Assembly: GCA_028023455.1 (NCBI GenBank)
Contig: JAQFVV010000011.1
Span: 5,642,001-5,706,000, forward strand
DNA length: 64,000 bases
Reading direction: 5' to 3'
Source of the DNA: Epiperipatus broadwayi
Lineage: Eukaryota; Animalia; Onychophora
Shown here: in pieces, positions 24,201-56,160 of the stretch
Layout of the letters: each line of letters begins with the position of its first letter
Position numbering within the stretch: position 1 is the first letter of the stretch
Notes under the pieces: generated by a model
What the model was told of the DNA's origin: nothing
The model's input: the letters and a program-made list of their open reading frames with translations, nothing else
Database searches by the model: none
Position numbers and translations under genes: made by a program

Positions 24201-26817
24201 ATTATAGTATTATAAAGTAATATATTGATAATAATATGGAAGTGTCCAGGTTCATTTAAAAAAGACATTTTCATGTGGCCTGCATTTTAACTTCTTAACC
24301 CTGTTTAGGGAAATTTAATATTATAACGTGAGCAGTAGAGATGTAGTCAGTAATCTGCCTAATTAATTGCTAAGGACATTTATATTAAGATATATTAAGA
24401 TACTAATCTCAATGAAAAAATAATAGTTAGAATCTTGTAGTTTAGAACTATAATAAGTGCAAAAAAGATATAAATTCAAGATTCTATAAAAGAAAAGTAT
24501 ATTATATTTTAATAAAGTACCAGACCTAATAATGTTTTATCAATACTCATTAGTTAATTATTAAAGTGTGATTTGAAGTAAAGTTAAGTCATAAATTAAT
24601 TCATATTATATGAATAAAATTAAGAACTGTAAAAGAAGTATTTTAGATCTACATGATAAAATAATTGCCAAAAATAACAAATTTATATGGTTTCAGGTCA
24701 AGTAGAACTGGTCTATCAATATTGTTGATAATTTATACATTTGTTCAAGAATTTCACAGTTTTGTTTGCTTCAGAAATTCAGTTTGTTGAAATTGATTAT
24801 ACATATATAATTAGTTTTGATGATAATATATTTGCTTATTAGGATTTAGTTTTATACTTACAATTTTTGATGATATTTCTTATACAGTATTTTTATTTTA
24901 TTTAATCCCTTTTTTAAAGATAGGTTCCATAGAGAGTATTGATATTAGTTCATTGTCAACACTATACACATGTAGTGAATCTGGTGATTTAAATGTATGC
25001 TATCTCCCCTCCCCTACATGATTATATATGTAAGAAAGGTCTTGTCTCATGTAAGATATGAACTAATTTATATGGTAATTTATTGAATAAATAAATGTAA
25101 AATAATGCTAAAAAAATATTAACATTATTTTAAATATGATAAAGTGAATTAAATTATTTCTGTTAAATGAAAGATATTCAAAAAATTAAAAGATTAGTAA
25201 ACATATATAGTAGAAAAAATAACTTGCAATAGTACAGTTGTTGATACTTTTTAACAAGTATTTTTTGCAGTTGATAATATTTTTTTTTATTTTTAAAAAA
25301 AAAACAACCTTTTCCCACTATAGTTGAATTAACAGAATATTTTGTTATATAAGCTAAAATTAAATTAATGTTCATCATTAATGAATAACTATTAAAACTG
25401 CATAATGAGATAATAGATTACACAATGTATAATAAAACTTACAATCTATACATTTTTAAAATATATGAATAAAAACAAATGAAAAAAAAAACAAAACCCA
25501 CAAACCATTCCCGAAATGTATTTGCGGCAGAATCAACTTTTATTATTTGGTCCAGATCATTACCCACATATAATTTCATGATTTTAGTTTAATGTTTATT
25601 CTTGTCAAATTGAATTATACATGATTTTTACATTATGTATACTAAATTTATGAACATAACATCAGGCATGGTTTTTTGGTATATGCAAGATGCTTGTAAT
25701 TGGGTGAGAAAAATATTAATATAGCCATATGGAAATATTTTAAAGTGTTATGGTATTTTTTTTTAGTTTTCAAATAATTTTTCATAGCTTTTTAATTTAC
25801 CATAATTTTGGCCTGTTTTTATCCATATATCACATGAAAGAAGTTTAGATACTACATTCTAAGATATGTATGCATGAACAGCTTTACCAAGCAAATTCCA
25901 TTGAAATTGTGCATACATTTTTTTATAAATTCAAATTGATGCATGAAATGTTGTTGTAACAACTAAAATTATTTTAAAATGCTGATATCCTTAGTGATTT
26001 ATAAAAACTATCTGTTAGCATGTTTTAATTTATCATTGATTGTCTGAAAACCTTATTGATTCTGTCATGACAATGTTCACACATAATAAGATTTTATTCT
26101 CTTTTCTGCATGAAATAGATAATGTGGAACAAAAGATATCTCTTTTCAAGAATTTTTATTTAACAGTTTTTAGTTTACAATTACATAACATTTTCTTTTA
26201 TTTTTATAATTTTTGTTAATCATGATGCACATCTCATATTTTAATACTTATCATTTTACACTTACAATAATCATTGATTATTTTACATTATAATATAAAC
26301 TTCAAACTTAAGGTACGGCACAATCACCTACTATCTTAATGTATTATGATATTTTAACATTACCATATCTAGGTGATTTTTCTATACAATTTTCAGATTT
26401 AGTGATTGTATAAAATACAATTAGCAAATTCATGCAGCCCTATCTATAAATGCTCGTGTGCATCTATATAATAAAAACACACACCAGTCTGCTGGTTGAA
26501 ATATTAAAGCAGTTTTATAGAGAAGTAATTGTGTGTTTTTATTTTGTTTTTATTTTTCCTTTAGTTAGTTCGTATATTTATTATTTTCATATATATATTG
26601 TAATCTTCATGAGAGTTTACATACGTGGCTTTTGTACAGGTATATGCATTTTTTTAATTATATATTTTTAAATGTTATAAAGCTCATGCATGTAAAATAA
26701 ATTATTAATTCAGTTAAAAAGAAAAATAATAATTATTATTATTAAATGACAATGTTGTTTTTTGTTTTGTTTATTCCAATTATGAGTGAAAATAAAATCG
26801 ACTATTTAAAATAACAA

Positions 26818-33077: not shown

Positions 33078-34339
33078 TAAAACATGCTGTGCACAAGATC
33101 AATACATAAGTACATGTCTTTCTCTTGTTTGAAATAACTAAGTTTATAAATTAGATACCTAGAAGAAACGGATTTTATTCTTTAATTAAAGATACAATAA
33201 AACATTCTTTTGTTTGATTCATTATTTATAATTAAGTTTTTTGAATAGATGTTAACAACTTTTTCCAATAAAGTGTGTATATTACATCATGTCAAGATAC
33301 ACAACACATTTAATTACGAATAAAGAAAGAATATTTTCTTAAAGTCATCACAAGAATATTTATAATCATTGTGGAGAACTTATCTCATTTATTTAAAATA
33401 TTTTTATATTTATTATCGATAATAAATTAATTATATACAGTATTTTGCTAATTATCTGGTCATTGCCATTAATTAGTTAATACTTATCATCTACTAATTG
33501 TATAAGTAGATATGGTCACAAGATTTTATAATTATTATACATTATTTAAAAGATTATCAGTTTGATCCAAAAGGTTATTCATTATTTTTATATACTTAAA
33601 CCATCTTTATCTTAATATTTATTTGATTAAGATATGAATTAAATACACTAAAATGCCATTTGCTATTTAGTCATATCAAATATAATAATTTATAATTTAT
33701 AAAAATTTAAAATTTTAAGAATAGTATTTACTATACTGTGTTATTAGAACTCTGTGATAACTTTAAATCAAATTTACATAATATGAAAGCTTAAGACAAA
33801 CCTGCTAATCTAAAAGAAGAATGTTATAGGATTTATTCTTGTAAATCCACAGTTATACTTTAAGTCATAGTAGAATCTTGAGATATTATTGTGATTAATC
33901 ATAAAGATACATCTATATAGTGCTTCCTTAAAATAAATATTTGTTTATTATAACATCTCCTAAAGTGACTATACAAGTGTTTAAAAGTTTAAGCTCAGCA
34001 TTATTTAATTGATAAATCGTCAAAACTTGTTTTAGCACAAATTATCAGTTACAATATATATATATATATATTACTTATCAAGCAAATTTTAAATTAAATG
34101 GCCTATAAATGTACATATATTCACATTAAAATTGCGATAAATCAGCTTCTCCAGGATGACTATTTCAAACATTTCTCAGCTAACTGCAATAAATTATTTA
34201 TGTAGTTGCCATTTTAGCATTAACTTGTTTCACTTATGTAAGTACAAAATTATCCCAAATCCAAAACTCAATCAAACTAGCCAAGAAAACAAAATCTACA
34301 ACACAAACAATGGTTTCACTGCTCTCAATAGGAATATGA

Positions 34340-35228
34340 AAAATTGAAAATGTTTTTTAAAGATTGAAGTCTTATTCCTAATCCAATGAAGACAGTATAG
34401 TAATTTTTTTATCTAAATAACAAGGATCATTTTGCAATCTGAATATAATCTTTTGCAATATTAATCTATAGCATAATTCTATCCCATGCTATTTAAAAGC
34501 AACTTTAGATCATAGACCAAGTTATTTTTCTCATCTAAGATTAGATCAAAATTAATTTTTCTTAGCATCAGCATTTTTTACTGGAGAATATTATATCCCT
34601 TGTTGGAGAAAAACTTCTCACTTAAACTTCCTGGGACTTCAATTAAATACTATCATGAGAAATTTTACTGGTACACCCAAGTGTGTTTCTTCACAAAGGC
34701 TTTATCTTTTTTTTTTTTAAATATTCCTCCACCTGATTTCAGAAGAGACTGTGAAGCAGGTCAAAATTGCCAATAACTAAAGATATAGTTTCATCACTCA
34801 AGACTAGGCTGAAATCAAGATTTTTAATTTTTGTTATTCAATCAAGAATCTACAATCAAAGAATTATGGCATAAAAACAATTCTTATGATATTCTAAATA
34901 AATTACTTTTTTCAGATTTAACAATAAAGCCACCTGAATTTGGTCTTTTTAGATGCAACTATAGTCTCATCAACAGATTCAGGATAAACTATGGTCATTG
35001 CATTCCTCTGCTTCACAAAGAGAATTTATTTTCACCCACTAATTTTTGTAAATGTGGATAAATAGTAACTATGAACCATATTGTTAATAACTATCAAACA
35101 TATGGCTATACTAGCAAAGTTGAAGGATTTAATAAAGCCTTTAATGAATCTATTTGGTTGCAATCTCAACATGTTTCTTTATGATATCTTGTTAATTATT
35201 AAGCTGTACAAATCCATATACTAAATAA
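34340..35228 (+). mobile_element. RTEX-like LINE, decayed 3' portion
   Basis: LIPNPMKTV..FYLNNK, HNSIPCYLKATLDHRPSY, KPPEFGLFR..INRFRINYGHC..LHK..CKCG..TMNHIVN (C-terminal Cys/His motif); ends CTAAATAA like the copy at 51362. Confidence 0.7.
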
Positions 35229-36338
35229 TGAACTGGGAAAATATTGTGGAGATGAAAACATTGATGAGTTGTAATTAAACAATATATTAGGGTCTTTTAG
35301 AAGGAAAGGTTTACTGCAGAAATAAAAGACAGCTTCATAAAATGTCAGTCAGAATAGAGAATAATATATTTTATATATGGACATAATTTTCATTCTCAGA
35401 TTGGTTTATTTACTCATTCAAAAGTCATCTTTAATGGATTATTGCTTTTTTTTTTTTTTTACTTTCTATCATTATTATTTTTGGATTGGAATAACCATGA
35501 ATGGCTGCTGATAAAAAGACTCATTTTTGAAGACCAACTAGATTTTGAAAAATAATATCATAGCAACATGCTAACACATATAAATGTTGTTTGCAATATC
35601 AATGCTATTCAAGTTGATCATTAACAGAATCATTTAAACATTCTTATTTGGAAATATATATGTTAGATAAGTGATATAATAAGAAAATGACTGTAACATA
35701 TACATCACATCATTTCTTTATTACATATGTATGTATATCTGAGGTAGAATATACAATTGTGGCATGCATACAAACTAGATTAAAAAAAATATAATTATGG
35801 CTATTGATAGATGAATGAAGTTAGTAAATTCAGTACATAGATTTCATGTTCATAGATTCAGTCAGATAAATTATGATTAAAAAAGTAGTTAACATGTTTA
35901 TTTGTCTTAGCTTTTTTAACATTTTTTTGTAAGATTTGATTAAAAAAAAACGTAGTATTCCGTTTGTATCTATAATTGATAAAAAAAAATAGTGCTAATA
36001 TTTTTATTATATATTCAATAATTACGTCATTTAAACATGGCTGCATAAATAAGTATAATTTTTACAGATTATAATACTGATTGGAGAAATGTATAAAGTG
36101 TACAGCTAATTATTAGCATCCAAGTTCCAAAATGTGACAATAGATTTTTTTAATTGAATGAACCGATACTCAATATTTTATTTCTATTTTTTTGTGTGTG
36201 TTCTTTACTGTGAATTGATATAAGAACGTTTACTTACAAGCAAACTATTGTGATCTTTCTCAAGATAATATAGAAATGATTATGATTTTTTGGATTTATT
36301 TTTTATTGCCGTAGTAATAGTATATACATAATACTTTT

Positions 36339-36553
36339 CATACTTATGTGCGTATGCTTGCAGAAGTGGGATATTTTTACCCTCTTCTTTCTGCTTTATT
36401 ATCTGGCTTTAATTATTGGGTTGAGTGCAGTTTGGGTGAAACACCAGAAATGAAAGTGCATTTGTCCAAATAGTTAAAACCAGTTAATAAAGCAAAAAGA
36501 AGAGGGGGGGGGGAGGGATATCCCACTTCATCAAGCATATACACATATGTATG
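36339..36553. repeat. Imperfect ~215-bp foldback (about 95-bp arms)
   Basis: CATACTTATGTGCGTATGCTTGCAGAAGTGGGATAT..CCCTCTTCTTTCTGCTTTATTA pairs with TAATAAAGCAAAAAGAAGAGGG..ATATCCCACTTCATCAAGCATATACACATATGTATG. Confidence 0.85.
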
Positions 36554-38995
36554 CAAAAATACTACACATATAATAAAATGAAAATTAAAATTATATATAT
36601 AAAGATAATATTATTTAATTTTTTTTTTTTTTTCATTAATTAATGTAACTACTGAAATTTTGGAATCCACATGGAATCTACATGTGCTTTTCATTTTAAC
36701 TACTCTATATGCAATTAATGGCTATTAAATATCCAGTGCTGAAAATTAGTACTTTAGAAATATTACAATGTATATACTGTGTGTTATCTGTATAAAAGAT
36801 TTGTACTATGCTTTAGACATATTTGATTAATAAATTATGCACATCTTTTGATGTGACAAAAGGTGGATGGAATTGTATATTATTTTTTAAGTGTCTCGGT
36901 ATTTCATTAAAGTAAAAAAAAATATATATATATTTTTTTTGGAAAAATCATTCAGCAGTAGCTTCACTAAAGTTTGACTATAATTATGTATATTACAAAC
37001 GTACAAAATTTATTTTATCAAAAAGAAAATAAAAGTCATTATCATAAATAATCCATTATAATATAACTGTTGGGGAAATAGCATTCCATGTTGGAAAGAG
37101 AATCTATTTGCTTAATTGAATAATTTTATGTTACTCTGATTTCTGTATATGTTATTATATATTTTTGCTTCTTAAAATTTACTTTATTAATTATACAAAG
37201 AGCAGATGAAAGGGAGGAGCATTAACTTGTTAATTTTATTTTTTTTTCGTACCACCTCAGTGATAAATTGACAGCTTTTATTGACCTATATATAATGTTG
37301 TTTTTTGACATTTATTATTTATTATTTTAAAACATTTGAATTTTAATTAGTTTTATTTATTATTATTATTTCTTGGCATTACCTTGTTGATTAATTAAAA
37401 AATGTTGTAAGGATTCTTCTAATGTTTTAGTAACATTATGACTTACTTTTTCAATTAATAAACTATATTCTAATTTGTATGTGTGCATAATTAAATTATT
37501 AAATGGGAAAAATTAAATCGTTCTTATATTTTTTTCAAATAATACAAGTATTATTTTATTTTTTACAATTATTTTTAAAAAAAAAACATGCATTTATACT
37601 ATATATTTATGTTTTCTACTATTCATATCATTTTTTTTTTTTTTTTTGGCTTAGTATCAAAACAACTTTAAACTTTACTTGTATATATAATTCAAGAATA
37701 CAATTATATTATAGATTTTAAGATTTTTTTGAATAGAATTGTTTGATTCTTTATATATCACTCTTTTCGTTTTGAGCTTTAATCATCATATATCTGGAAT
37801 GTAATATTTCTTTATTTTAGAGAATAATAACTATATATTTTCTTTTTAAAAAGATAGATTATTTTTAAATTAAATAGTACTAAAAATGTATATATATATA
37901 ATTGAATGGTCATTTGGAAGATTCTAGAAAAAGAAGTGAAAACTGAACTTTGATTTAACAATTTGACATTTGAATTTAAAGAACTCCTTAACATTTGGTA
38001 CAAAATGTCAAAATTATAGATTCATTATTATTTTATTGGAACTGTTTATTATAAAATTGCAATACAAGTCTTGATATGTAGGCCCAAGTCATCTTATCAT
38101 CAACAATAATTAGACATTCCCATAATTGATTATTAAAAAATTATTTGAAGACAAATCTAGATTTTTTGAGATTATTTATGATGAGAAGCCATAAACAAAT
38201 TATAAACAATATATATAACAAGCATGCCATGTTTGTCTAAATTATAAACTTATTAATATAGAAAATGTTATGTTGTATGTAAATAATTTCTATGATAATA
38301 GTTTAAGTTCTGCAGCAATATAAATTTTAATGAGAATTGTATATATTGTTGGATATCTTATGACTTGTGTATTGTGTTTGGGATTTTTTCTGTAAAGCAG
38401 ATTGCATGATTCCATAGAGTCCCTGCAAGATAGTAATCATTATTTACATGTTTATTTATGTCATATATTTTGAATTGCTTTAAGTTTTAAGTTTTTCTTG
38501 AAAATAATGTTATTTTATTACTTGATGAATGTTGAATGTTTTAAAATTAATGATTTAACATTTAATTATAAATTTTAATGCTGTTGTATCTATTACTAAG
38601 GCACATTTTATTGGATAAACTATATGAACTGAATGCAAAGCAATGATACTTTTTAAAAAATGTATTTTATAATGAAGTTAATTAGGATTTTTGTGAAAGA
38701 ATTATATTTCATTTGTATTGTAAAAATTAAATTACTGAGACTATAAAGAAGTATAACATCAACTGCTGTTATTAAAAATATATGGGTGAGCATAGAAATA
38801 TATTGGAAAGTTACTAGCAGACAAGATGTTGAAGTTTCAGAAATAAAAGTTTACTACAGAAAAATTTAAAAGAAAGCATCATTAGATATCACAAAACTTA
38901 AGACCTCCCTGTGATATATTTGCCTTATTTATGGTTTGTATCATCATTATTTGACTCTTTTTTTTTTGCCTTTTTCTTTTTTTTTTTGGAATTAG

Positions 38996-39153
38996 GATAG
39001 CCATATTCATGTATGAGTTTCACCTCTTTTGACAAAGTAAAAATTTAGATTAAACAAATCAAGAAAGAGCGAGAATTTGAAAAGAAACAACAACGATAAC
39101 AAAGTAACTTTTTGCGATTTGTCAGTCTTTTGTGTATTCTTATAATGATACTA
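38996..39153 (+). other. Candidate alternative upstream exon of the PP2A-B'' gene ending ATG ATA CTA (M-I-L)
   Basis: Long pyrimidine tract plus AG at 38995; local CpG retention; ATG at 39145 with A at -3; donor CTA/GTAAGA at 39154 in phase 0, compatible with the exon at 46317. Confidence 0.25.
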
Positions 39154-40180
39154 GTAAGAGTTGATTATGTAATATTAATGTTTATTATTGGTTTTTTAAA
39201 AATAAACGATTTTACCCGGTTCATTCTTGCTTTATCTGATATATTCTAAAATCTTTCTATCTTTTTGAACAATCATATTTTTTGTTGTTAATACAATACA
39301 TTAATTTTGTATTAAATAAAATTTGTCAACTTGTATTCATGTTAGTACTGACAATCTCTTGCTGACATCAATTATAATAATATATATTATTTAATGTAAT
39401 TAAAGTAATCTTGAGCATTATTGTATATATATAAAATATTCATTTTTATAAGAAAAATCTTTTTTTCATCTTGATTACAAAAATTTTATATCAGAAATTT
39501 AAAATGTTTCTGTATCTCAACATGACCATTTTTATAAACTTGTTTCATAGTTGAATTTATATAAATGTTCTTTTATAAAAAGGAGTAGGAAATTTTTTTC
39601 TTGAAAAAGATTTCAGAATGAAGTCAGAATGTCAAAATAATTGATCCAGTATTGTGGAAACTGTTCCTGATATTTACAAACTACGTAATATATCAAGAAA
39701 AAAAGTTTTAAGTATCTGAAGCTTGAGAAAAATCAATGTCAGTACTATTCTAGAAAAAAAGGAAGTAGCAAATTGGAAAGTGAAAATTACTAAACTATTA
39801 TCATACTAATTTTCAGTTTAAATAAAATCCTAAGGAATATTTTAAATGAAATATTAAATGTTTAAATAAAAAATCTTTTGGCAGATGAACAAGCTTGATT
39901 TATAAAAGACAGACCTACTTTTAGCAGATACTTTTACTCAGTCTTATTGCAGAGTATTATTTCTGCTATGATGTATTACTCTGGTGACTTATTATTCTAA
40001 GTTTGCAATATATTTAAAAAAATGCTTTGCAAGGGATGTGCAACAAACTTAATTGATCAAATTTGTCTGCAGATCCCATGGAGGCATTATTTTAAACATA
40101 TCACAACCTTAGAATAATACATCACCAGAGTAATACATCATACCACATGTAATATCAAACTTCAAATCTTAAAAAAAAGG

Positions 40181-40809: not shown

Positions 40810-40999
40810 TTTTGATAGCACAAAATCATACAGGTCAGCACATTTTACAACTTGGTGAAGTATATATTTGAGATTGATTAGTCATGCCAGGATTCTAGGA
40901 TGGTATGACATCAGAAATGGAAACTTTGAATAATTATTGCTGGATGAAAATATCAGAAGAGTAATATGTCATAGCAGGAATATTGAGTTTATGCATTTA

Positions 41000-41880
41000 T
41001 TTTATATATATCAGAAAAGTTTTAGTGGTATTGTGAGAAGAGTTTCAATTATTTTATGTAGATAGTAAAGCTATTAATTTTTAAAAAAATATATGTGATA
41101 ATTCAAAAGCATTTAGCAACATGAGAAAAATTGGAAGCTCATTTGAAATTTGAAAAGCCACAAAACAAGTAAATTCACTTCGAGCAAAATATATTAATTA
41201 TACATTGGAAAGAGAAATGAATAAGTTCAAAATAAATTTGTGTATACAAATGAAAATCAATATATTAAACTACGTAAATGAAAATAATCATTGAAAAAAA
41301 TGAAATATTGAAGGAGCAAAATAATATAGTTTGCACAAACATAGTCAAAAGCAAAAACAACAGTACTGATAATGAACTTAACTACTATAGTTATTTTTAT
41401 GCCTTAAAAATAAAATGGACTGCCATTAAGAAATAATAGTAAGAGCAGTTAGAGCAAGAATATGCTTAGTCAAGATTTGGAAAAGCAAAGAAGTCAGTTA
41501 CGAATCAAATTATATGTTTTTACCATGTGCTATCAGCCTTTGAAAAGACTTGCTACAGAATATTGTAAAGAATTATCTAGATATAAATGTTGATTAAGAA
41601 CTGCATTTAAAAAAGAATTGGAGAAAAAATTTTGTGTTGAAAAATCATAGAATAGAAATGATCCATGTTTGGCCATATACGTCAAATGAATTATGATTTT
41701 AAATTAAAAGACCTTTTTGATATCGCATAAAGCACAATTGAAATAAACACAAAGTTGGTGATACTAAAGAATAATGTGTTGCTTGTTTGTATTCAAAAGA
41801 TAGCCAAAATTGGAAAAAGGGTTTTTTTTTTTTAAAGCATTGTGCACTTTTGAATGTTGACTCCATGGCTTCTTTTGAAG
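41000..41880 (+). mobile_element. Highly decayed RTE-like LINE fragment
   Basis: A-rich stretch with SMFGHIRQMN (about 41660-41690) resembling the RTE C-terminal WFGH..RM motif; little else recognisable. Confidence 0.3.
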
Positions 41881-42352
41881 AAGAAGAGGTTAATTTAACT
41901 AGAATGCAACTATCATAGATATATTGTAGAAAGAAATATTCACATTTTTAGATTGAATACTTATAAAGCAAACACTCTTCAATCAATGTTAACATTTTTA
42001 AAATCCAGAACAACTTTTTTCACACTAGGTGGGGTAAAAGTTTTGTTAGATTAAAAAAAAAAGCATTAACTTTGATTAGCAAGTGTTTGCTTTTCATAGA
42101 TATATGGTTATATACAGAATATTAAAGATCATGTGGACATAAATTATAAGTAGTCAAAATAAGAGTCATAGATCAATTCATAGATCACATGACCCTATCT
42201 CTTAAGCTTGTAAGTTATAAACTACTAGCTATTTGAGTTGAATAGCTGGGTTTGAAGACATGTAGATGTCTGAAAATTTCAGATTTTCCACTCAATAGAT
42301 AACTTTTAGCTAAGTGCTTAGCTTTGGGTTGATATTTTTAGATCTAGTGTCT

Positions 42353-42424
42353 GAACCTACCCTGACACCTCTCTGAGGAGTGCCAAAGCACGAAACCATG
42401 GTCAGGGGTTTGGGGGGGGGGTTC
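42353..42424 (+). ncRNA. Canonical minimal type I hammerhead ribozyme
   Basis: Stem I ACCTCT (42367-42372) with AGGGGT (42404-42409); core CTGAGGA 42373-42379; stem II GTGC-caaa-GCAC; GAAA 42392-42395; palindromic stem III ACCATGGT; cleavage triplet GTC, cut after 42403; stem I extends via GAACC (42353-42357) and GGTTC (42420-42424). Confidence 0.88.
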
Positions 42425-45400
42425 CTGACAGATATATTTTAAGTGCTGGCTCTGGCTAAGCATTTATCATAAAGCTTGTAGAGGAATTGGCAATCCTCGC
42501 TGTTTATAAATTATAAGTGTTTTGAAAATGATAATAATAATTGTTAAAAGTAAAATGTATTATAATTTTTATTTTGAAGTAAATAATAATTATTTTATAA
42601 AAAAACGAGGATGCTATAGAAACCAGTCACAAAAGCTCTCTTCAATAATCTCTTATAGATAAAAAGGAGGATTTAGTGTTACTTCTTTATCACATCACTT
42701 ATTGGAAATAAGTCATCAAAAATTGTAATGCCAAAGCTAAATATGTAGAACTTATTTGCTAGAAGAAGAAAACTAGTCATCTAAATTGATTATCACATAG
42801 AAATATTTTTTTTTATAAATTAATTAGTAAATCTACTTATTTCAATGCACTGTCTGGGGACCCCTTATAGGAAAATTACTATGGAAACTACCATGGAATG
42901 AATCAAAAAGAAGTTAAAATGTGAGTATTGCTAGCAGATGGTTAAAATTAATGATTTTAATGGCCATATATACACATTCGTAGAGACAGAAATATATGTG
43001 AGCTCACATATTATAAGCTTTTTCTCGATGAATCATAAATCCACAAATATTTTTTTTCATGCATGCTCTTCATATAATTTTTAAGTATAAATATGTAGAT
43101 ACATTGTTATTAGTATTATTATCATTCTATTTGTTAATTAAAGTTATTGTTAATAATTTTGTTGTTTGTTATTTTTTATCTGAAGTTCAAGCTAATTATT
43201 TATTTTATCATTTAATAATAGTATTAAGATAGAGGGAGGGGGTAGCAATTAAGAAATATAATTGAATCTGCATAGAGATTTGATTTTTATATATGATTAA
43301 TTTGATTGTTACCTCTGACTATGATAGATTTGTCAACTAAAAATAAAATTGTTTAGTTATCTCCACCATGTACATAGTCACCCATTAGTTATCTTTATTT
43401 TCCTAGACAAAAATTAATTTTCGAATATTGTTTTCCATCTTATTCTTAATTTTATTATTACCAATTGTTTAAAAAGGGCAGTTACTGTTACATATATATA
43501 TTGATATTATTTCTATTGTATAAAAATTTAAACTGGAGGGAATATTCTAATTATGATTTTCATGTAAAATTAGAAATCATTATTTATGGTTTAGTAGAAG
43601 ATATATACAATGAAAATAGTAATGCGCTATAATGTAACAGACCGTCAGACATAATTGCTTTAACTGTTCATGCCAAAAATGTAATGGACTGAGGTCTGGC
43701 ATAATTTCCAGATGGATACTCAATGTATTAAAATGAAACAGCAAAGCAATGGAATATTGTTGATGGAGAATATGGGAAAAGGTCTACATTATACTTGACC
43801 AATATTTAAGCTTGTCTACAACAGTTAAGTTTTAAAATTAGGTCAAAATACAATTTTAAATGGTATACCCAGAACCCTCCCAACTTACAGGTCCTATGAC
43901 ATCTCTGAGTTCAAACTCAGTGAAGAAATTTGCCTTTAACTCTACTCAAAGATGGATTTAAATAGGATGACAATAACGTGACCTCTATATAGGTCCCTAA
44001 TGGCTTTTACTAATGAATATATTCAAATTGTGTACACATGTATGATAGATGTTCTGGTGAGTGAAGCATGAATGATGCTTGATAATCTAGAGACCAGAGA
44101 AACAAATATTTTAACTTCAAAGAACAAATATTTATTAATAAAATCTGGATTAAATTAATAACATTTATAACTTAATAAAAATATATACATGAATATAATA
44201 AAATATGGATCTCTCTTTACTATAATACGAGTAGTTGTAAGTTAAATCTTAAACATATCAATCAAAATAAAAATTATGAAATTACAATGCACAATGTAGA
44301 ATAAACTATTATTTTGAGGATCAAATTATATTATTAGATGTTCAATGTTTTATTTCATGGTGTTATCTGAATGTATATTACACTTATATCTATGGATTGT
44401 TAATAAATGTTTTATAGATAGAGTTCATTCATGACTGTTAATCATCCAAACACGAAAATTTACTCATATATAATTACCTGTTAGTAAGTAAAATAAATAT
44501 TTAATTTTATATATTAAATGCCTAATTAAATGTAGATGTTTAAAAATCTTACCTTTGTATTTTAAAGTCAATGTCCAGATGTCAATTCTAATGCACCCAA
44601 TTATACTATGATTTTATTTACAAATATATATATATATGTATACCTTGAGTTGTGTATTTATATTTCTCTCCTCCTATCAAAATTTAAACAAAATGGGTTC
44701 TTTACATTTTAAGATTTATGGGGGGGGAAAATGTTTTCTGCAAATATGTAAAAGGGTGAGAAAAATAGTAACTCAACTCTCAGTATACACCAAAAAATAC
44801 AAATATAAAATATTTAAGAGCATCAAAATGGAATGAAATCTTGGACTTCTTTAAAAATAAAAGGTTAAAATTTGTAAGAGTGGCTTCAGTGTTTTTTAAG
44901 CAGATGGTGTCTTTCTTTTATTGGAGCATGTTGAATGATTTCAAACTCCAACCACTTAAAACAATTCCCATGATGAAAAAGAACTCATAAAGCTCCCGAT
45001 TTTGTAGCAGTTTCCTTTCTGATTCCATAAGAACTTCCTCTAAATCAGCTCATTTAGATACTAGGCATACCAATGGTTACACTTTATCACTATCTGATGA
45101 CACAAAGAAGGCACAAAGATCCTGTGACAATTAATTTAGCAAGATTGCATCATTATGCTATATATATATCCAAATACGTAGTTAAATGTAGGTTTTTTTT
45201 CTCAAAGTTTATAATATAAATAGAAACGTTATTTATATGCAGTATTTTGCTTCAAAAGAAATACAAATTAGTATTTTAAAATTCTATTTCATTATTAGTT
45301 TGCTTTTTTTTTTTTTTTTTTTTTAAAGCATTTTATAATAATTATACTTTTGTAGTTGATAAGCAAATATAAATCTCTCAGAACTTTCGAATGAAAATTC

Positions 45401-46316
45401 ATAACTTAAATAAAGAATGTCTCTTTTCTTTTTAAAATATTCTGCACCTTACCAAATCAATAATAAATAAATGCAATTCAAGATATTAAACAGTTTTTTT
45501 TAAACGAAATTGAATCATGATAATCAATATAACAACAATAATAAAAATATTCTTATTCTAAATCTTTGCTTCAACTGTATTCCATTTTTAACAACCAACA
45601 ACAACTGTTGCTTAGTTGTTTTTTTTTCACGTTCCAAAATCAGTAAATGTTTACTTTTTTTTTACTCTTTTATATAAAAGAAACTTGATTGCTAGCATCT
45701 CTTAACGTTAGATTATTATGTCTGTCACGTCATGATTAAAACTATTAAATCTATAATGTATAAATGTTTCACATTTATTTTAACAAAATAATATATAAAT
45801 TCATTCCTTTCTGAGGGCATGGTTATTTATATATATGTCTCAAAATATCCTAAAACTATTCAATGTGTTTTAAAGGTTGGGTGCCTATATAATCTTCATA
45901 ACCTTAGCTTGTCATTCCAAAACATCAGTTATTATTATTATTATTATTTTTTATAAGGATTGGGCATCACATTACAATATATTTTAAATTTTTGTAAAGA
46001 AAATTAATAGGAGTTATATAGGCATATAGTGCTCTAAATCTGGTTACATTAATCTAGTGCAAATTTCAAAATAACTTAAGAGTTAGGTTAGCAGAATTTC
46101 TGATTTAAGTTAGAAAATTAAAGTTAACTACTTAGAGATTTTCAGTTTTTATTAGTTTATTAAACTGATTTTGTATGTGATGATTATAATTATTTTCTTT
46201 TTTTCAAATTTATTCTTTTTTTACTATTATTATTTTAAATTACTAGAAAAATTTTAACCTATTTTTTATTAGAGATTACTTTAATCGATTTTTTTTTTTT
46301 AATTATTTTATTTTAG

Positions 46317-46538
46317 CAACAAATAGCCAAAGATTTTCAAAATAATGAAAATAAATCGACATTGAAACGGGCAAATCGTCGAACTTCATCATTCCTTAAA
46401 ATTCCAAGGTTTTATTATCCTTGCGGTCGTCCAATTTCACCAACAGAACATGAAAATATTTTGCAAAAAATAGCAATGACCTTTTCTAAATTTGAAGATG
46501 GAAAAGTTACCAAAGAAAATTTTAAAGTTATTACTAAG
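46317..46538 (+). CDS. PPP2R3A: Internal exon of serine/threonine-protein phosphatase 2A regulatory subunit B'' (PR72/PR130, PPP2R3A/B-like)
   Basis: TTTTAG acceptor at 46316, AAG/GTAAGA donor at 46539, 222 nt, phase 0-0. QQIAKD..LKIPRFYYPCGRPISPTEHENILQKIAMTFSKFEDGKVTKENFKVITK matches the family segment IPRFYFPxGxP..(H)EQTLSRIETAF..GKIAK that precedes xCGCPLYWK. A versus B orthology cannot be resolved; the ORF-track tail after ITK is intron read-through. Confidence 0.88.
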
Positions 46539-49460
46539 GTAAGAAATAGGTATAACCAGTCTCATTTTTTCTCATTTTTAGATAAACAATATTTAAGAAT
46601 TATTTGTCTTTTCTTTTTTTATTTATTTTTATACATTATTAATAGAAAATACTTTCAAAAAACTATTTTGAAAATAATTTTACTGTAAAATGGTAACAAT
46701 TTTAAACTGATTTTTTTTTGTTAAATATAATATATTAAAAATTTTTAAGCATTATAACTTGTGATTAAATAGCAAAATTTCTTTATGAAGCTACTTAATG
46801 GCATTTCTTTCTCTTTGAAAGAATATGTTATTGATGTAATGAAGAATAATATTAATTATTGTAACAAAAAATAAACAATTATAGTCTTGCAGGTAAGCAT
46901 GCAGGTTTTGAATAAAATAGTGATCATAATTTTGAAAGTGAAATTGTATTACCCACAAAACAAGTGGAGTTCCACAAGTCAAATTGAATAGAAAAATTAG
47001 AAAAGGTTGTAAATAATTTAAAAACTGTTTATTAGAGATTTTCTTAGAACTACATTTTTGAATGATATTTTATTGCAGCAAAAGATTTCACAGTAAATAG
47101 TTTTTATTCTGAAAGGTAATATGTATTTATGAAATTCATTAAGTTTTTCCAGGCATTCTGCAAGATTCAGATTCTTTGGATAATTGTTATACTATATATA
47201 ATGAAAGACCAATCTGGAGGATGCATATAATTCAGGGAAAACCATCCTTTGCCAGTTGGCTAGAGTACTACTAATCATCCATGCAAATATAGTAACTTTT
47301 TTATATTAATAAAATTGACTGATCTAATATTAAAGTATCAATAAACCATATAATGATCATCTATAAATTGACCTATTTCAACATAGCCAAAGATTAAACA
47401 TGGCAGAATCATTTAAAACTCATTACATAAACCTTGTTTAATAACTTAACATCTAATAAATATTTAATTTATATATTCAATTAACTGATTATTGATTCCA
47501 TTATCTCAATGAAAAATGAAAAATCTTTCTCTAATAATTTTGTAGGTAGTTTAGAATTAGTGACACTTTCAATTGATATTCTCATTTTTATGTTTTTTGT
47601 TTTAAAGATTAAAAAACTTTATATTTAAAAAAAAAAGTTTTTGAATTCAAATTCATATAAAAAAACTATTATGATGATGAGATTTATATTTTAAAAAATG
47701 AGTTAAAATAAATTATTACCAATATGCTAAAACAATTAGGAACAAAAGTAATTTTTTGACATTTAGTTTTGTTTAATTTTAAATATTTTAGTTATATTGT
47801 ATTCAGAACTTTGAAAAAAATTAATTTGAATTCAAGACCCCATTTTTAAAGTATAAAGTTTACTAAACCTAACCCAATATTTCCAAATATATTCACAAAG
47901 TTAGAATCAATATGGTAGAAAGCAGTGCTAATCCCAACGTATCATTTTGTAAAGACTATAAAAAGCAGACTTTTAATGGAATGTTCTTAGAAAATCATTT
48001 ATCAGGATATCAAATTTTGTCAGTTATCCATGCATAATTAACAAATTAACTATTTGTTTGTTAAAGTCCTAAAATTACTCATTAACTGCTGTTTTTAATT
48101 ATCATCTGGAAATAATTCAAAATTAATATCTTTATTTTTAATAATTCTTTTATTGATGAAGTTGTTTTTTTTTTACTTCAGCAATGTGTAGTTTTTGTTT
48201 TTGTAAGGAGTATACCATAGCATTTATTTTTTTGTCATTATTATCCATTTTATTAGTGAAGTTCTCGTAATGTTTAAGTGAAAAAATATATATATATATA
48301 TTTTATTTTTTATACTTATACCATCATCCACTTCTCATGTTATTTAAGATTAGTATAAAAATGGCATCATGTTTATTTAACTTCTAAAGGATTATGGTAT
48401 ATTAAGTTTTCTTATTAACATGTATGATTTGTTCAGCTGTTTTACAGTATAGCAATTTTTTATTACTTCATCTATAATTTCATAATACATAACATTTCAA
48501 TTTTCCATAATTTAAAAAAAATAATAAAAATATTGCCTTGATAAATGTGTGAACATTTCTGGGATGAAGAACCCTGCAAGTTTTTTTGTTGCAAGTATTC
48601 TGTGTTAGATTGCACATATAATGATTGTTAAATTATTATTTTTAACAAAGTTTTTTTTTATCTTAAACTATAAAATAATTAAAGAACTAATTTAAAATCT
48701 CATCACTATGACTTATTTCTCACAAGGTAACTTCTATGTATTTGTCAAATCACTATATTTTGCACTTCTCCTTCCATCATTCCAAGCAACTCTTTTTAAA
48801 TATATATAATTGAAAGCAACTCATAAAAATATAAACCTATTTTTGGAAGAATAATAAATGCCAAAATTTATTAAAGAATAATTGTCTTTATACTATTAAT
48901 TTTAAAAACTTGAACATTATAAAGAGATATTAGGTAAAAAATATATATATTATAATATTTGAAGCAGAGACAAAAAAACAAAGACTTGAAAAAAATAGAG
49001 TAGAATACTGTTTTTTAAGATGAACACTATAAGGATATCAGGTTCAGAAAAGCAGTGATCAAGGCTATACTTAGGACAAATATAATGACTGATAATAGAA
49101 TGATAAAGTGAAATAATTTGAAAAGAAGTTGTAAGAGACGTGTCATTGATTAATTAAACTATTCTATTTTACATGTATTCTAACATATGAAAATAAACTG
49201 AAATATACAAAAATAAGAATGTTATTCAATAAAAATAGTAGATTTTTGGTTTGGGCATATCTAAAAGATCAAGATGTTCTGAAGATTATATTGGGGGGAT
49301 GGGCATTATTAAAAAATTTGGGCATGTCATATATTAGCCCATATTTGGGGTTTGAATTTATCTCGTATAAAATTGTTTTCAGCTAATTATTGTCAGGAAA
49401 TGGATGCCTAGCTATCTTTAACTAAAAGATAAAGCAAGAATGGAAAACAGTAAAGTACAG

Positions 49461-49620
49461 CTTTTTTTTTTTTTGTGAGGGACTGTTGGATAGGCCTTTG
49501 AGAAAAATGATCTGTTTATTTGAAAAAGTGTTTTACCTTTTTTTTTTTTTTTTGTGAGGGACTGTTGGATAGGCCTTTGAGAAAAATGATCTGTTTATTT
49601 AAAAAAATGTTTTACCTTTT
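49461..49620. repeat. 79-bp-period tandem duplication bounded by poly-T
   Basis: GTGAGGGACTGTTGGATAGGCCTTTGAGAAAAATGATCTGTTTATTT at 49475 and 49554. Confidence 0.95.
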
Positions 49621-50229
49621 ATTTACCAAATCAAAAAAAATGTGAAAACCAAAAAAAAAAAAAAATGTAGATTTTAAAATAAACAATAATTTTAACAAAA
49701 AGCTTTAGCTATTAAAACAATAGCAAAGTTTTCCACATAATAGTGCTACCTAGTACACGCTCTAATAATTAATGGATGCTTGAGGGTGATATATGATATT
49801 TAAAGTTTTAACTATCTCAAAGTATATTCATGTCAATAAAAATCATTGGAAAAGTTAGCACTAATACTAAGGTGAGTGGATGGGTTGTTTTTGAAAAACT
49901 CCAGAATCAAAAATTAGATTTGATTTTGATAACACTTTTTAGAATTGAGAATAAACTTAAAGAAGTAAACCAACCTATGTTAATATTGATCCATATATTA
50001 TTTTGAATCATTAGTATTTAATAAAAAAGATGAAGATTGATACTTAAAGATAAGTTAAAAGAAAAAATACATTACTATCATTCTCAAAAGTGTAAAATGA
50101 ATTAGATATAACAGAAAAAGATATACAACAGAATGCTAGGAAAAATCTTATATGGAATAGCATTCATATTAATTTGAACCTTTAAAAGACTTAAAAGGAT
50201 TGTTAGATATATAAGTGTAGAATTCTATT

Positions 50230-50720
50230 CATTATCATTATTAACATTTCCACCCATTTTCAATCAACTGCTGGATGGTTTCTCCAAGTTTAATCCAGTT
50301 TCTCTGATCCATAGCTTCTCTTGTCTAAACCACATCAGAAAACTTCCTTATTTCATCTATCCATTTTATGTGTGATTTCTTACTAGGTCTTTTACAATCT
50401 TTTGGTATCCCATTTAAAACTTCCACTGTTCATCTATTATCTCTTCTAGCAATATCTGTCCAATACAAGAGTATTTTGAAGATTAAAGTGGTAAACTAAA
50501 GAAGTAAAAGTAAATAGAGATTATTTAAATCATCTGAGTTTTGCATTTGATGTGGCTATTTGTATCAAAGTTTCAGAAAATGTTCAAGAATTATCAGATG
50601 AAAGTAAGAAACCAGAACTAAGAATAAATGATAAAAAAAAAAAACCAAGAAACTAAAGATTAATAATCATGAATTAGAAGAAGTTAACAATTAAAATATC
50701 TTGATCAGATTTTTATCAAT
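50230..50720. mobile_element. RTE LINE insertion with inverted 5' part
   Basis: 50230-50461 is the RTE 3' end on - (homologous to 23580-23790); 50462-50720 is an upstream RT segment on + (DYLNHLSFAFD, ELSDESKK.ELRIN, HELEEVNN*KYLDQI). Confidence 0.75.
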
Positions 50721-51361
50721 AATTTGTTAAGTTAAATTTTTTTCATTCTCGTTGCAGACTTTGATTTCAATGGTATAACTGCAACACAATATTATTTTTG
50801 TAGGTATACTTTTCCATTTCTTTTATCAGAAACACTGAATTATATATTTCAAATATATTTTATTAATATGTAACATTATTATTTATTATTAGTATAATTA
50901 AATATTAATATGTTTAATGTTATTTATTAAAATTCTTTTATTATTAAACTATGATTTCTTTATATATATATATAATTATTTTGTAAGGAATATAATTCTG
51001 ATATGATGATAATCATCCTTTATGCATGTACCATAATTTTAATATTAATTTAATACCCTTCATATATGCACCAAACTTTTATTTAACATCGTTAATTTAA
51101 TATTAAAAGTATAGCAATTATCTTCATATCAGAATTACAGTTTGACAATCCACTAGTAAAAAAACTTCTAGATTATTTCCATTCAAAGGAATATAATTGT
51201 AAATTCTGACTATTTGATCTTTCTCAGTTTATGAAAATGATTTCATTTCTATGAAATCAGTTTTTTTAAATTATTATTTAAAAATTTTAATGGTTATGAT
51301 ATAACTCTATCATTGACTTTGTTATATTAACATATAAATTATTTCTTCTTTTATAAACTGT

Positions 51362-54000
51362 AGTTTATTTACTTTTATTTATTTAGGGTGTGGATTTAGG
51401 CAGCATAATTATTAAATAGATATTATAAAGAAAACTGTAGAAGTTCCAGCTATGAGATAGATTCATTAATGGCTTTATTAAATCCTTTAATTTTGACACT
51501 GTAGCCTTAAATCTAACAGTCATTAATGATATGGTTCATAGTTTGTATTTACCTATATTTACTAAGATCAGTGACTAATAAATCCCATTTATGAAGTTAA
51601 TGAATGCAATGACCATGGGTTGCTCTGAATCTATTGATGCAACTTCAGTTGTGCCTCGGAAGATCAAACCAGCTAGCTTTATTGTTGATCTGGAAAAAGA
51701 AATTTATTTAGGAATTTCATAAGAATTTCATTTTTATGGCATAGTTCTTTGATTATAGATTTTTTGTTGAATATCCAAAATGAAGATCTTGATTTGAACA
51801 GAGTTATAGATTTTTTGTTGAATATCCAAAATGAAGATCTTGATTTGAACAGAGTTTTAGATGGTGAAACTATATCTTTTGTCAAGTCCAATCTGCGTAA
51901 CAGTTTTCTGTACATTTTCTGTGTGGTAATTTCTCTTTTGATGTTTTGGAGGAGGAATATATGAACGAACAGGAAGCCACTAGTAGTAATCTTAAGTGTA
52001 CCATAATTTTCACATGGTAATATTTGAGTATCTAGAAATTTAGTACGAGAACTTTTTCTCCAAACACTAATGCTAATAAAGCTATATATAAAGTAGTTCC
52101 ATCACAACTTAAAATAGTGCCAATCACTTTTCTGAGGAGGTTATGAGGAAAATAAATCAGGTTATGATTCAAGATTATGTCTAAATAGTATATGGTAGGT
52201 ACATGTTATAGTCTATTATTATTGAAGATTATATCCAGGTTACAAGATGATTTTCCTGATATTTTAATGATAAATTGATTATACTTTTTTTGATAGTCTT
52301 TGAAAAATATTTCCAATTTTTTCATATTCTTATAAAGATACTTATTTATTTCAGGAAATAACTTCTTTTGAGAAGCCAAGGTAATGTCTATAGCATAGAT
52401 GATTTCATGCCTCTGTATCTTCAAGATCAATGATTAATATATTAGTAAAGTAGGTGAGAGAAACTGAACTATGAGGCAATCTATTCTGTAAAATTTTGTA
52501 TCCACTATAATGATCATTTCATTTGAATTTTTTTTACTGAAGAGTACTTTGTCAAGAAATTAAAATTTGTCTACATTTAAATTTTTTTAAAAACTTTTAG
52601 AAGATCATTTTTACAAACAGAATTATAAGCAAAGGGTAGATCAATAAAGATAGTACCAGTTTTTATTACTGGCTCTGTTTGATTTTAAGACTGTTATAGT
52701 TTTATTTGTATGCTTAATTTATTGAATACTTTCTGTTTGAATACTGTTACTGAATAATTCTCCCATCCATGCTTTGACTTCAAGTTTCTACATTTTTTAT
52801 AAACTCCGGAAGTACTAGAAGTATGTTGACTACTCCTGAGGCTTTTTCTAATGTAAGATAATCAAGGACAATTTCAATTTTGCTGACTTCCTCATGTTTT
52901 ATCAGATTGCTATTATAGATCATTTATGAAAGAGATGCTTTCAATTTTAGTTTTCCTCATTCTATCAATTTTGATATTAGAAGTCTGGTATATAAGATTG
53001 GCAACCTGATTAGCAGTAGTGGCTTTTTTAGAAAGCCTTTTACCTCTACCAAGCTTTTGTGGAAGTGCTCTTGCTTATGACTATGTTTGTAAAGTTTTCC
53101 TATGGTCTCTCCATTTTTCTTTTCTGACATCATTCGTGATTTCATAAGTTTGTAAGCAATTTTAAAATCTTTGACAGAAAAGTTGCATATAAAAGAGCAC
53201 TGCTAATTTTATTCCAACCTGGAATAAATTACTTTTATCCACAAGAATGGCTTCTCTGGCAGCTGTTATTAAGTTTGTTAAATGTTTCATAGCAAATGAG
53301 AAGTGGAGAGATTCTATTTATACTTTGTTCAAGATTTTCAATATATGGACTCTTATTAACTTTTCTTAAATTTCATCTTGGAACATGATAACCTTCAACT
53401 ATAGGAATTTAAATTCCCATAGTGATTAGACTAGGTTTATGTTGTCTATAGGGAATATGATTTAATATTAGTAGTTCATCTGGAAATTATGAATTTGTCA
53501 AAACGATAATGTAAATCAGAGTTGTTTCTGTTTGTCATGTGCTTGTATTGAATGTTCCTTCTTGCTTAGCATCATAAAGTTAACATGTTATTTACTACCA
53601 TCCATTCTACAAGTTGACAATCTGCTTTGATCCTCATATCATACTCCTGAATTCTACTATGAAAATTGGAAATCTCCTATAATTACAATAAATGTAGGAA
53701 GAATTGGAATCAGTTGAGAGAGCCAATTTGCATTGGGAGATTTGTAAACATTGCATACATAAAAAATATATATATCATTTGATCTTCAGTAGAAGTTAAT
53801 GAGTTTCTTAAAGTACAATTATATTAACATTGTACTAAACAGTTACTTTGTTGAGGATCTCCTGTTTAGATTTTGTTATATTCTCAATGTTAAATAGAAT
53901 TTTATTGTATTTCCTAGGCAAAGATAAGATTGCTATGCAGAATGAATGCCTAATGCTTAAGGTATTCTATGATTGCCTGCATCATGTAGTTATTTTTATT
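51362..54000 (-). mobile_element. RTEX-like LINE, decayed, spanning endonuclease to 3' tail with internal deletions
   Basis: Minus strand in order: VCNVYKSPN..IIGDF (APE), YDAKQEGTF, KASGV..LPEFIKN, KTGTIFIDL, NRLPHSSV, IYAIDITLA (YADD equivalent 52386-52397), GFDLPRHN..NRFRATHGHC..TMNHIINDC, (TAAA)n tail. Confidence 0.8.
51753..51854. repeat. Exact 51-bp tandem duplication within the RTEX-like LINE
   Basis: TTATAGATTTTTTGTTGAATATCCAAAATGAAGATCTTGATTTGAACAGAG at 51753 and 51804. Confidence 0.95.
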
Positions 54001-55199
54001 TTATTTTGAGGATCCTATGACTTTTATCTCAATAGTTTTAGCATGGCTTTCCTTAATAATATGATTAGAATTAACATTAATTGTAAGATGAAGTCTGCTT
54101 TCTATTTAGAGACATTAGTTTCACATACTAATTCATGTTAATTTCAGGGTGGGCCACAAAAGACTGTCATCCACCTTCCAATAAACTGTAATTTCTAGAA
54201 AGTTTAGAGAAACAAAATTAACAAAGATTGGCATAATTGAATTTGCCAGCCACTCAGCAGCATTTATAATTTAATAATTGCTCTAAAAAATTAGAATTGC
54301 ATTATTTTTAAAAATTGTAAATTGTTTAATTAAAATTATAGCTTTCGGTATGGTCTGTTAAAAATGTTTTATTGATATAATCTGATACTTCACAAAATCG
54401 ATTTTTGTTTATAATTTATATAAAAAGTGTCTTTTTTTTTAAAAAAAAAAAAAGTAATAACAATAATCACAACATATAATTAATATCTTTTTAATTATTA
54501 ATGTATAGTTGTATTTTATAAAAATAAAAATTTTGTTTTTAAATATGCACATGGAGACATGTAAATACAGACACATATACATACGAGCTTTCCCCCCCTC
54601 TCATATTGGTAAAATGTAAAGTTACCTCCAGTAATAATATGGTTACTTTTAATTTTCATAAAGTCTTGTTATTATGGACTTTAAATATGACAAAGAGAAT
54701 TGAAACTTTTTGATTTTTTCTCATATTTTTTTAAAAAAAACCCAGTGGGGCTCTTGATAGGACAGATTAGTAATGATATTAGTGAATTTAAGAACTAGAA
54801 ATTTTTGGATTGATTTTAACTGAAATAAAATAAAACATCAGTTTGATTATTTGAATAGAATTGTTGTATTCCACCCATCTCTTATATTTCAACAATATAC
54901 TTTATTGACCAAAAATTTATGTTACACAGGTTTTACAAATGTTTTGCAATGGTTTTGCCAGGATTAAAAGGCAATTCAAATATAACTAACATGGTATGAG
55001 CTTACAGTAATACTGGAATGAGTTTAATCGATTGTTGGTTATTGTATAAATCTGGTTAATATAACTGATTACAGATGTGTAAGTGTGGACATTGGAAATT
55101 ATAAATGATTGTCATTAATGATATTTTTTGTACAATGTAGTACATGATATATATATATATCATTTGAATGAAAATTCATTTTCTGGAGGTTTGACTGGT

Positions 55200-56160
55200 C
55201 CCATTAAACAGGCTTTTATGGTATAAGACTAATCTAATGAAGATGTCTGGAACATAGTCTTTCATAAAGATAGTTGTCCCATGAAACAGATGAGATATCT
55301 GAGAAGGTTGTTAGTACTGGCTACTGTAGTTGTGGTAACTTATAGGGACTGCTCTCTAAGGAGTGACCAGAGGATCACAAAAATGTCTGGGGGACTATGT
55401 TGTTATCTCATGCTTTTAGCTGTCATAATTTGTTGGTAAATGAAAATGGATGCTTCCTGGTGTTGTTGCCTATAAAAAGGTGCAATGTGTTCACCAGAAG
55501 GTAAACAGATAAATGTGGCTGTATGCACTATGGGGGGGGGGAGTGATTTTTGGAAGGACTAAGTTATGTAATGGATAAAAGTAGCAGACTACCTCTATAC
55601 ATTGAACATAATTTGTTGTGTGGAATTTAGTACTTAGCAGTTATTGAGAAGGTGTTGTTGAGTCTCCTTAGCTTCATGGCATTGCCCATAGAATGTGTTG
55701 ATATTTTGTACAGATGAAAAAGGAAGTTGGAAGCACATATAGGTTGAGTGATTAGGAAGTCAAAAAACTTTGGTTCTAGTGCCCATTTTTTAAATTGGTG
55801 GAGATGACATCAGTTATTAATGCTAAGCATGGGGAGGGATAATCATTCTTTTGAGTCTGGATAAAACAGGTTATTTTTGCCAGTGAGTGTTCTTGGAATT
55901 GTGGGTGAGGCTAATCTGCCCTATGGTCACTAGGGTTGAGTGAATGAGTTGCAAGATACGACATTGAGGGGAAGAGGGGTTCTGTAGGGGTTACTTTCAT
56001 CAGGCACTGAAGGGTTTGGTACTGGCTGGTAATAACTATTAAATTAATGGCTTGTTGTGAATAGAACATCTGAATATTGTGCAGGCGTAGACCATTATAC
56101 AAGAGTTGGTGGTTGAGCTGTTTTATTGAGATTGATATTGTCTTGTGATCCCAGAACATA
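55200..56160 (-). mobile_element. Highly decayed LINE endonuclease-region remnant (possibly I group)
   Basis: Higher GC, A/C-rich minus strand; fragments LNVVSCN, QE.H, NLYVLP, HILW, YSHIYL occur in APE-domain order. Confidence 0.35.

Follow-up and report, generated by a model that had tools for sequence, protein, structure and literature searches.

A type I hammerhead motif within a probable recent retroelement insertion upstream of a PP2A-B'' exon in the onychophoran Epiperipatus broadwayi

We have analyzed a 64,000-nt stretch of the genome of the onychophoran Epiperipatus broadwayi (assembly GCA_028023455.1, contig JAQFVV010000011.1, positions 5,642,001 to 5,706,000 of the forward strand), referred to here as the window and numbered from its first base, in which a hammerhead ribozyme motif is found upstream of an exon of the regulatory subunit B'' of protein phosphatase 2A (PP2A). 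The motif lies in a well-bounded insertion, and we consider it very likely that the insertion is a recent dispersed copy of a very high-copy, non-coding hammerhead retroelement, inserted in the manner of Penelope-like elements and carried as a passenger in an intron of the PP2A-B'' gene. An earlier reading of the letters without database searches (the sequence-only reading) had recognized the ribozyme and had proposed either a solitary young Penelope-type terminus, tolerated for being inactive as a monomer, or a co-opted, switchable cleavage site that affects the splicing of the host gene.

A canonical type I hammerhead

The motif and its palindromic part are located as follows.

42367-42409, + strand: hammerhead motif, full-model match to RF00163, with cleavage predicted between C42403 and A42404
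42395-42402, + strand: palindrome of helix III, ACCAUGGU, 8 nt, with the GUC triplet within it, read from the sequence

Every base of the core is standard for a type I hammerhead. Helix I is made of ACCUCU (42367-42372) and AGGGGU (42404-42409), 6 bp, and encloses the CUGAGGA core (42373-42379), a 4-bp helix II (GUGC/GCAC, with a G-C closing pair and the loop CAAA, 42380-42391), GAAA (42392-42395) and the GUC triplet (42401-42403), from which the scissile bond is predicted to be that at 42403/42404. In an 800-nt scan the Rfam model Hammerhead_1 (RF00163) gave a score of 34.3 bits, compared to a gathering score of 34 (E 1e-6), and the alignment spanned model positions 1-45 of 45. The conserved core, the three helices, the open helix I and a score not below the gathering score were all found. 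Rfam scans of the whole window, either at the gathering score or at E <= 1, reported no hammerhead; this miss is an effect of the speed filters and not evidence against the motif. The strict core pattern (CTGANGA, 8-20 nt, CGAAA, 2-10 nt, GTC) occurred once in the 64 kb, with 0.00 occurrences expected from shuffles. As a reference, the GC content was 26% over the window and 50-60% at the motif region. The motif is real and no chance match. The ribozyme call of the sequence-only reading was thus borne out by the score and by the canonical core positions, and the features that it had described within 42353-42430 (core, closing G-C pair, palindrome, CCCTGAC and CCTGAC) are all present.

A motif of this kind might still be a chance match or a dead relic, catalytically incompetent, which we regard as very unlikely. 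Its score exceeds the gathering score by just 0.3 bits, the full helix III cannot form in a monomer, and minimal Penelope-type hammerheads have been published as poor cleavers in vitro (PMC4209133). All this would suit a relic, but the canonical state of the whole core, the null expectation for the strict pattern and the high probability predicted for helices I and II speak against it, as does the position of the motif exactly at the tip of a significant rod (see below), in a young element whose family is present in RNA runs.

Anatomy of the insertion

The insertion is 354 bp long (42152-42505, 39.5% GC) and is enclosed by two exact copies of a 13-bp target-site duplication (TSD). Its boundaries were also examined with the contigs of four public runs, aligned to 40900-46800. 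The family mentioned from here on is the set of repeat copies represented by these contigs. The parts of the insertion are the following.

42139-42151, no strand: left TSD copy, ATAAATTATAAGT, identical to the 13-mer at 42506-42518
42152-42222, - strand: inverted arm, 71 nt, reverse-complement copy of the family 3' tail without the hammerhead, from alignment with the family 3' continuation
42223-42225, no strand: filler TAC, 3 nt, at the head-to-head junction, after the inverted arm and before the match to family contigs begins
42226-42505, + strand: direct arm, a 5'-truncated family unit of 280 nt with 41.8% GC, from matches to family contigs
42506-42518, no strand: right TSD copy, ATAAATTATAAGT, of which the first 12 nt are shared with the sequence by which the family continues, a microhomology at the 3' junction

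An exact 13-mer common to two 40-nt windows at the same spacing was found in ~0.1% of random pairs taken from the window. In the contigs, the unique upstream sequence ends at 42173, and loose ends fall at 42145-42148, 42226 and 42517. A total of 107 family contigs with loose ends before 42226 run on in the 5' direction with a common consensus that is absent from this copy. Since other copies extend beyond 42226 with shared sequence, this one must have been truncated at its 5' end. On the other side, family contigs match as far as 42517 and from there share a continuation that differs from the present locus. When reverse-complemented, the inverted arm could be aligned with 42502-42517 plus the consensus behind 42517 over 48 columns (42 identical, 4 mismatches and 2 gaps), and because of this alignment we identify 42152-42222 as an inverted copy of the family 3' tail. 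The 12-nt match between the target and the family sequence at the 3' end of the direct arm suggests internal priming at a microhomology.

The motif had been described as standing in otherwise eroded sequence, which was mistaken, given that it sits in a well-bounded young insertion. The proposal of a young Penelope-type terminus, on the other hand, fits the exact 13-bp TSD and the head-to-head, 5'-truncated layout. Penelope-like elements are described in the literature as leaving a TSD around a copy truncated at its 5' end, next to which lies a second, inverted copy, likewise 5'-truncated, together with additional tail sequence at one of the ends (PMC8557442).

Among the DNA contigs we also observed weak joints that connect the inverted arm (42168-42222, mostly ending at 42222) to direct arms starting within 42242-42484, with truncation at 42347, 42418, 42471-42484 and other positions and with fillers of 3-6 nt, those at the place taken here by TAC being of 3-5 nt. 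These joints have short sides of 20-29 nt and their reliability is low. If they are real, the inner end of the inverted arm would be fixed and the truncation of the direct arm variable.

A different origin for this layout would be a DNA-level fold-back transposon with terminal inverted repeats, similar to a miniature inverted-repeat transposable element (MITE), with the hammerhead as a passenger. The outer ends do pair (42207-42222 is 88% complementary to 42502-42517) and a TSD is present. However, the arms are grossly unequal (71 vs. 280 nt), the right-hand "repeat" is mostly the TSD, and 13 bp is a long TSD for most cut-and-paste families. Other copies run past both inner boundaries, the weak joints suggest variable points of 5' truncation, and the arrangement equals the Penelope-like footprint (PMC8557442), making the fold-back origin highly improbable. 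An imperfect 11-bp TSD at 42215/42504 was considered as well and rejected: 11.5% of the random pairs drawn from the window had such a match, and the independent boundaries agree better with the 13-bp exact TSD.

A very abundant family present in related species

A total of 29,303 contigs aligned to the region covered, mostly 90-99% alike. For the bins that span 42082-42672 the DNA contigs summed to depths of 1.0, 2.35 and 0.32 million (0.48 million at 42412), as compared with depths of 34 and 31 for the exact unique flanking contigs at 40915-42173 and 45961-46800; summed contig depth is no copy number and shows only that the family has very many copies. The term "solitary" used in the sequence-only reading holds inside the 64-kb window, where blastn with word size 9 found no second copy, but fails outside it, the family being extremely abundant in the DNA contigs and present in several related species. 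It was found in small runs of two of them (organisms B and E), organism B providing a 477-nt contig over 42322-42479 with 13 differences. Two exact patterns scanned in viral and metagenome contigs gave no matches.

Family contigs also appeared in the RNA runs X5 and X10 (one RNA run comes from organism A). In run X5 the RNA depth at 42412 was ~380 for the family vs. 62 for the host exon, with the qualification that the contigs are strandless and that this depth is assignable neither to the present copy nor to a direction. In an RNA run of organism E the distribution was different: the 5' module (42226-42378) reached a summed depth of 14,500-25,500 vs. 23 at 42412, with 102 at the host exon. 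The 5' and hammerhead modules seem to be combined differently between species or subfamilies.

Predicted RNA structure and the supposed off state

Two structures were predicted in the direct arm.

42299-42480, + strand: rod, an imperfect long hairpin that prolongs helix I and bears the hammerhead at its tip, from minimum free energy (MFE) and centroid folds
42481-42498, + strand: 3' hairpin GAGGA-AUUGGCAA-UCCUC, from a repeat scan and a hairpin scan

The MFE and centroid folds of 42226-42517 and 42139-42518 agree on the rod (z = -3.7 and -3.9), and none of the shuffles reached as good a fold. In it 42299-42372 is paired with 42404-42480, which continues helix I for ~75 nt per side. The ensemble pairing probability is 0.65-0.85 for helix I and 0.99 for helix II. 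When two copies were co-folded, the prediction was a double hammerhead with an 8-bp intermolecular helix III, at -57.6 kcal/mol vs. 2 x -25.0 for the monomers.

The sequence-only reading had proposed built-in off-state pairings, in which CCCTGAC (42360-42366) or CCTGAC (42424-42429) would pair with GUCAGG(G) over the cleavage site. The occurrence of these words in both flanks is indeed beyond chance (0 of 30,000 flank shuffles), but the predicted probability of the pairings is <=0.001, and forcing them costs +3.8 and +11.2 kcal/mol, figures that give the proposed switch no support. The CCUGAC words lie on opposite strands of the rod, where their partners are the G-run and the UGUC of 42349-42352, and their joint presence is explained by their belonging to the strands of the extended helix I. 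A second candidate for alternative pairing is found in the 3' hairpin, where 42487-42498 is complementary at 11 of 12 positions to 42375-42386, a segment comprising some core bases together with the 5' strand of helix II. A complement of this quality appeared in 0.02% of shuffles. The pairing would cost +12.9 kcal/mol if forced, and its predicted probability is 0. On energy grounds we rejected both the off-state pairings and the 12-nt complement as dominant structures.

The G10 run within 42410-42421, just 3' of helix I, varies in length, with one G fewer in 41 DNA contigs. With the GGGG that precedes it, this run might in principle fold into a two-tetrad G-quadruplex and compete with helix I.

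The idea that the ribozyme is inactive as a monomer was an assumption. The monomers of amphibian and Penelope-type hammerheads cleave poorly (PMC4209133; PMC7229834), but rates of 0.1-0.8 per minute have been published for the cleavage of invertebrate retrozyme monomers, the helix III of which is mentioned in passing as a stem of two pairs with a tetraloop (PMC7229834).

The host intron and the question of co-option

The only part of the host gene detected in the window is one exon.

46317-46539, + strand: internal coding exon of the PP2A regulatory subunit B'' (PR72/PR130 type), 223 nt, from spliced RNA contigs

RNA contigs from two species (runs X5 and X10) match exactly 46317-46539 and then continue into non-adjacent sequence; the contig of run X5 has 0 differences over the exon and extends 131 nt further upstream and 1096 nt further downstream. 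An AG acceptor precedes the exon and a GT donor follows it, the exon frame is open for 74 codons, and the product can be matched to PP2A subunits of the B'' type from shortly before their P2R3B EF-hand domain into it. Pfam found no match for the exon peptide alone, which is too short. In a tblastn search with nine B'' homologues the exon was the only one in the window, and the upstream exon was not located. No RNA depth peak of exon size was seen in the non-repeat bins of 41097-46316, and the upstream B'' exon must accordingly lie further upstream. Hence, as the sequence-only reading had anticipated, and now with the support of the spliced contigs and the splice sites, the hammerhead copy is very probably inside a PP2A-B'' intron, in the sense orientation and 3.9 kb upstream of the exon. 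Downstream, tblastn detected no other PP2A-B'' exon over the remaining 17.5 kb of the window (46540-64000), and the next intron probably exceeds this length.

The same intron has more repeats, with DNA depths of 34,000-40,000 at 43855-44248 and of 3,000-16,000 at 42885-43478. At both places the contigs differ consistently from the window. The high RNA bins at 43855-44248 belong to another repeat, whose contigs are unlike the window.

By the proposal of co-option, the B'' pre-mRNA would have in the hammerhead a cleavage site that can be switched, kept inactive by pairing with the CCUGAC words and tuning co-transcriptional splicing. The sense orientation in a probable intron, 3.9 kb from a spliced exon, the intact core and the presence of CCTGAC in both flanks beyond shuffle expectation agree with it, and conserved intronic hammerheads do exist in amniote genes (PMC6155905). 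Nevertheless, this copy is one among very many near-identical ones, and its insertion is clean and young, the TSD having no mutations. The pairings of the switch are of negligible predicted probability and costly in energy, the words themselves are explained by the family's own rod strands, and the contig of organism B over 42322-42479 does not extend into the flanks of this locus. The sequence-only reading had itself named many near-identical copies lacking orthologous conservation as a finding that would count against co-option. Because the family is abundant, the insertion young and the supposed switch energetically costly, we consider co-option extremely unlikely.

The comparison with the amniote intronic hammerheads is instructive. 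As here, they are of type I and placed in sense within an intron of a protein-coding gene, and they are thought to derive from retroelement hammerheads of the same type (PMC6155905). However, those hammerheads are single-copy, with conservation at orthologous positions in different classes, while the copy analyzed here is a young member of an abundant repeat family, so that it does not group with the domesticated type.

In another version of a host effect, the sense hammerhead would cut the nascent PP2A-B'' pre-mRNA enough to alter its output, as an early domestication of the amniote kind with 42487-42498, and not CCUGAC, as the attenuator. We give this only a very slight chance. In mammalian cells, reportedly from work by Dye and colleagues in 2006 and by Fong and colleagues in 2009, intronic ribozyme cleavage is tolerated or harmful depending on its speed.

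A proposed origin for the insertion

The insertion of a recent copy of the family is best described by the following sequence of events. The element would have entered by target-primed reverse transcription of the Penelope-like kind, probably driven by the reverse transcriptase of a Penelope-like element, leaving the 13-bp TSD, a 5'-truncated direct arm with the ribozyme and a short inverted arm at the upstream end. During the life cycle of the element the hammerhead would cut multimeric or read-through transcripts to RNAs of unit length. Two copies might pair through the palindromic helix III and act as a double hammerhead, and the long helix-I rod might stabilize the processed RNA. The copy in the PP2A-B'' intron would merely ride there in sense and be neutral for the host, nothing indicating a host function. 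The parent may be either an autonomous Penelope-like element or a non-autonomous retrozyme.

Several points weigh against this account. The direct arm stops inside the family sequence, and the internal priming suggested above for the 12-nt microhomology is needed to explain it. No reverse transcriptase-like open reading frame (ORF) of >=50 aa was found within ~4 kb of the copy, and its upstream flank is unique sequence. The view of the family comes from contig matches plus one readable copy. To these have to be added the limits on summed contig depth and on strandless RNA contigs already mentioned.

Comparison with known hammerhead retroelements

Canonical metazoan type I hammerheads have a helix I of 6 bp, a helix II of 4 bp and a short palindromic helix III (PMC4209133), and metazoan hammerhead repeats are 150-450 bp long, with low GC and TSDs >4 bp (PMC4209133; PMC7229834). 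Non-LTR (long terminal repeat) retrozymes are highly expressed and thought to be mobilized by Penelope-like elements (PMC7229834; bioRxiv 10.64898/2026.07.22.740005); dispersed monomers are common, and ~43% of the copies of Xenopus are intronic (bioRxiv 10.64898/2026.07.22.740005). The element described here is like the metazoan non-LTR retrozymes (Cervera and de la Pena 2020; Li et al. 2026 preprint) in the length and type of the three helices, the non-coding unit of a few hundred bp, the modest GC, the self-paired RNA, the very high copy, the TSD >4 bp and the dispersed, often intronic monomers, which in those systems co-exist with Penelope-like elements. The direct arm has no ORF, and its 280 nt at 41.8% GC fit the size range of a non-coding retrozyme unit. 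Retrozymes typically form head-to-tail arrays, from dimers to multimers, and give rise to linear and circular RNAs of unit length. Unlike such arrays, the locus consists of one 5'-truncated unit plus a partial arm in inverted orientation, and tandem head-to-tail repeats are absent (one unit, with no second copy in 64 kb), monomers being recognized as a derived form (bioRxiv 10.64898/2026.07.22.740005).

The Penelope-like pseudo-LTRs, or pLTRs (PMC4209133, by Cervera and de la Pena, 2014; PMC8557442, by Craig et al., 2021), provide the second parallel. All parts of their footprint were found at this locus, and the hammerhead is likewise near the 3' end and probably works as a dimer. In contrast, the Penelope minimal hammerhead ("min-HHR") lacks helix III, and its helix II is long (6-8 bp) and contains a bulged base (PMC4209133), whereas here helix II is of 4 bp and helix III is an 8-nt palindrome, which sets the motif apart from that type. 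The locus also differs from a full Penelope-like element in that no reverse transcriptase/GIY-YIG gene is attached to it.

The schistosome Sm-alpha hammerhead repeats (Ferbeyre et al. 1998, cited in PMC6155905) have the same ribozyme architecture and are also dispersed, short and non-coding. In the Rfam consensus, GUCC-CAAA..-GGAC and ACGCGCGU align column for column with GUGC-CAAA-GCAC and ACCAUGGU. We take this printed consensus to represent the schistosome ribozyme. ARAGORN detected no tRNA-like head in 41800-42900, and in this truncated copy we found neither such a head nor RNA polymerase III boxes, which sets it apart from the Sm-alpha repeats, as does the lack of any sequence similarity beyond the ribozyme.

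The exact TSD, the head-to-head arm and the 3' junction with its 12-nt microhomology make this locus a clean, well-bounded example of a hammerhead-retroelement insertion. By itself it carries little weight, being one more sense-oriented intronic copy, but it is useful as a reference copy for a consensus of the family and offers a natural test case for the question of whether sense intronic hammerheads are tolerated through slow cleavage of the monomer.

Other features of the window

The sequence-only reading had also mentioned a second, different hammerhead family in the window, and two hammerhead-like motifs of another family are indeed present, at 3766-3795 (- strand) and 3922-3951 (+ strand), in opposite orientations. 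Their pattern is CUGAUGA-AGGCCACAAG(C/A)CA-GAAA-CUAG-UC, in which helix II would be closed by an A-A pair. With E up to 10, Rfam reported no hammerhead in 3700-4700. Adjoining these motifs, at 3998-4410, a 207-bp unit is found twice with 98% identity, and its long hairpins produced spurious matches to microRNA families.

At 23889-24197 (- strand) there is an ORF of 102 aa that, from its sequence alone, resembles the C-terminal part of a reverse transcriptase of the LINE (long interspersed nuclear element) type. The protein that matches it best in the database (59% identity) comes from a sturgeon record in which it is marked as contamination, and among its homologues, with 47-80% identity, there was no near-identical copy from this genome. 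Finally, two tandem duplications are present, one at 49462-49624 (79-bp unit, 2.1 copies, 96%) and the other at 51753-51862 (51-bp unit, 2.2 copies, 98%).

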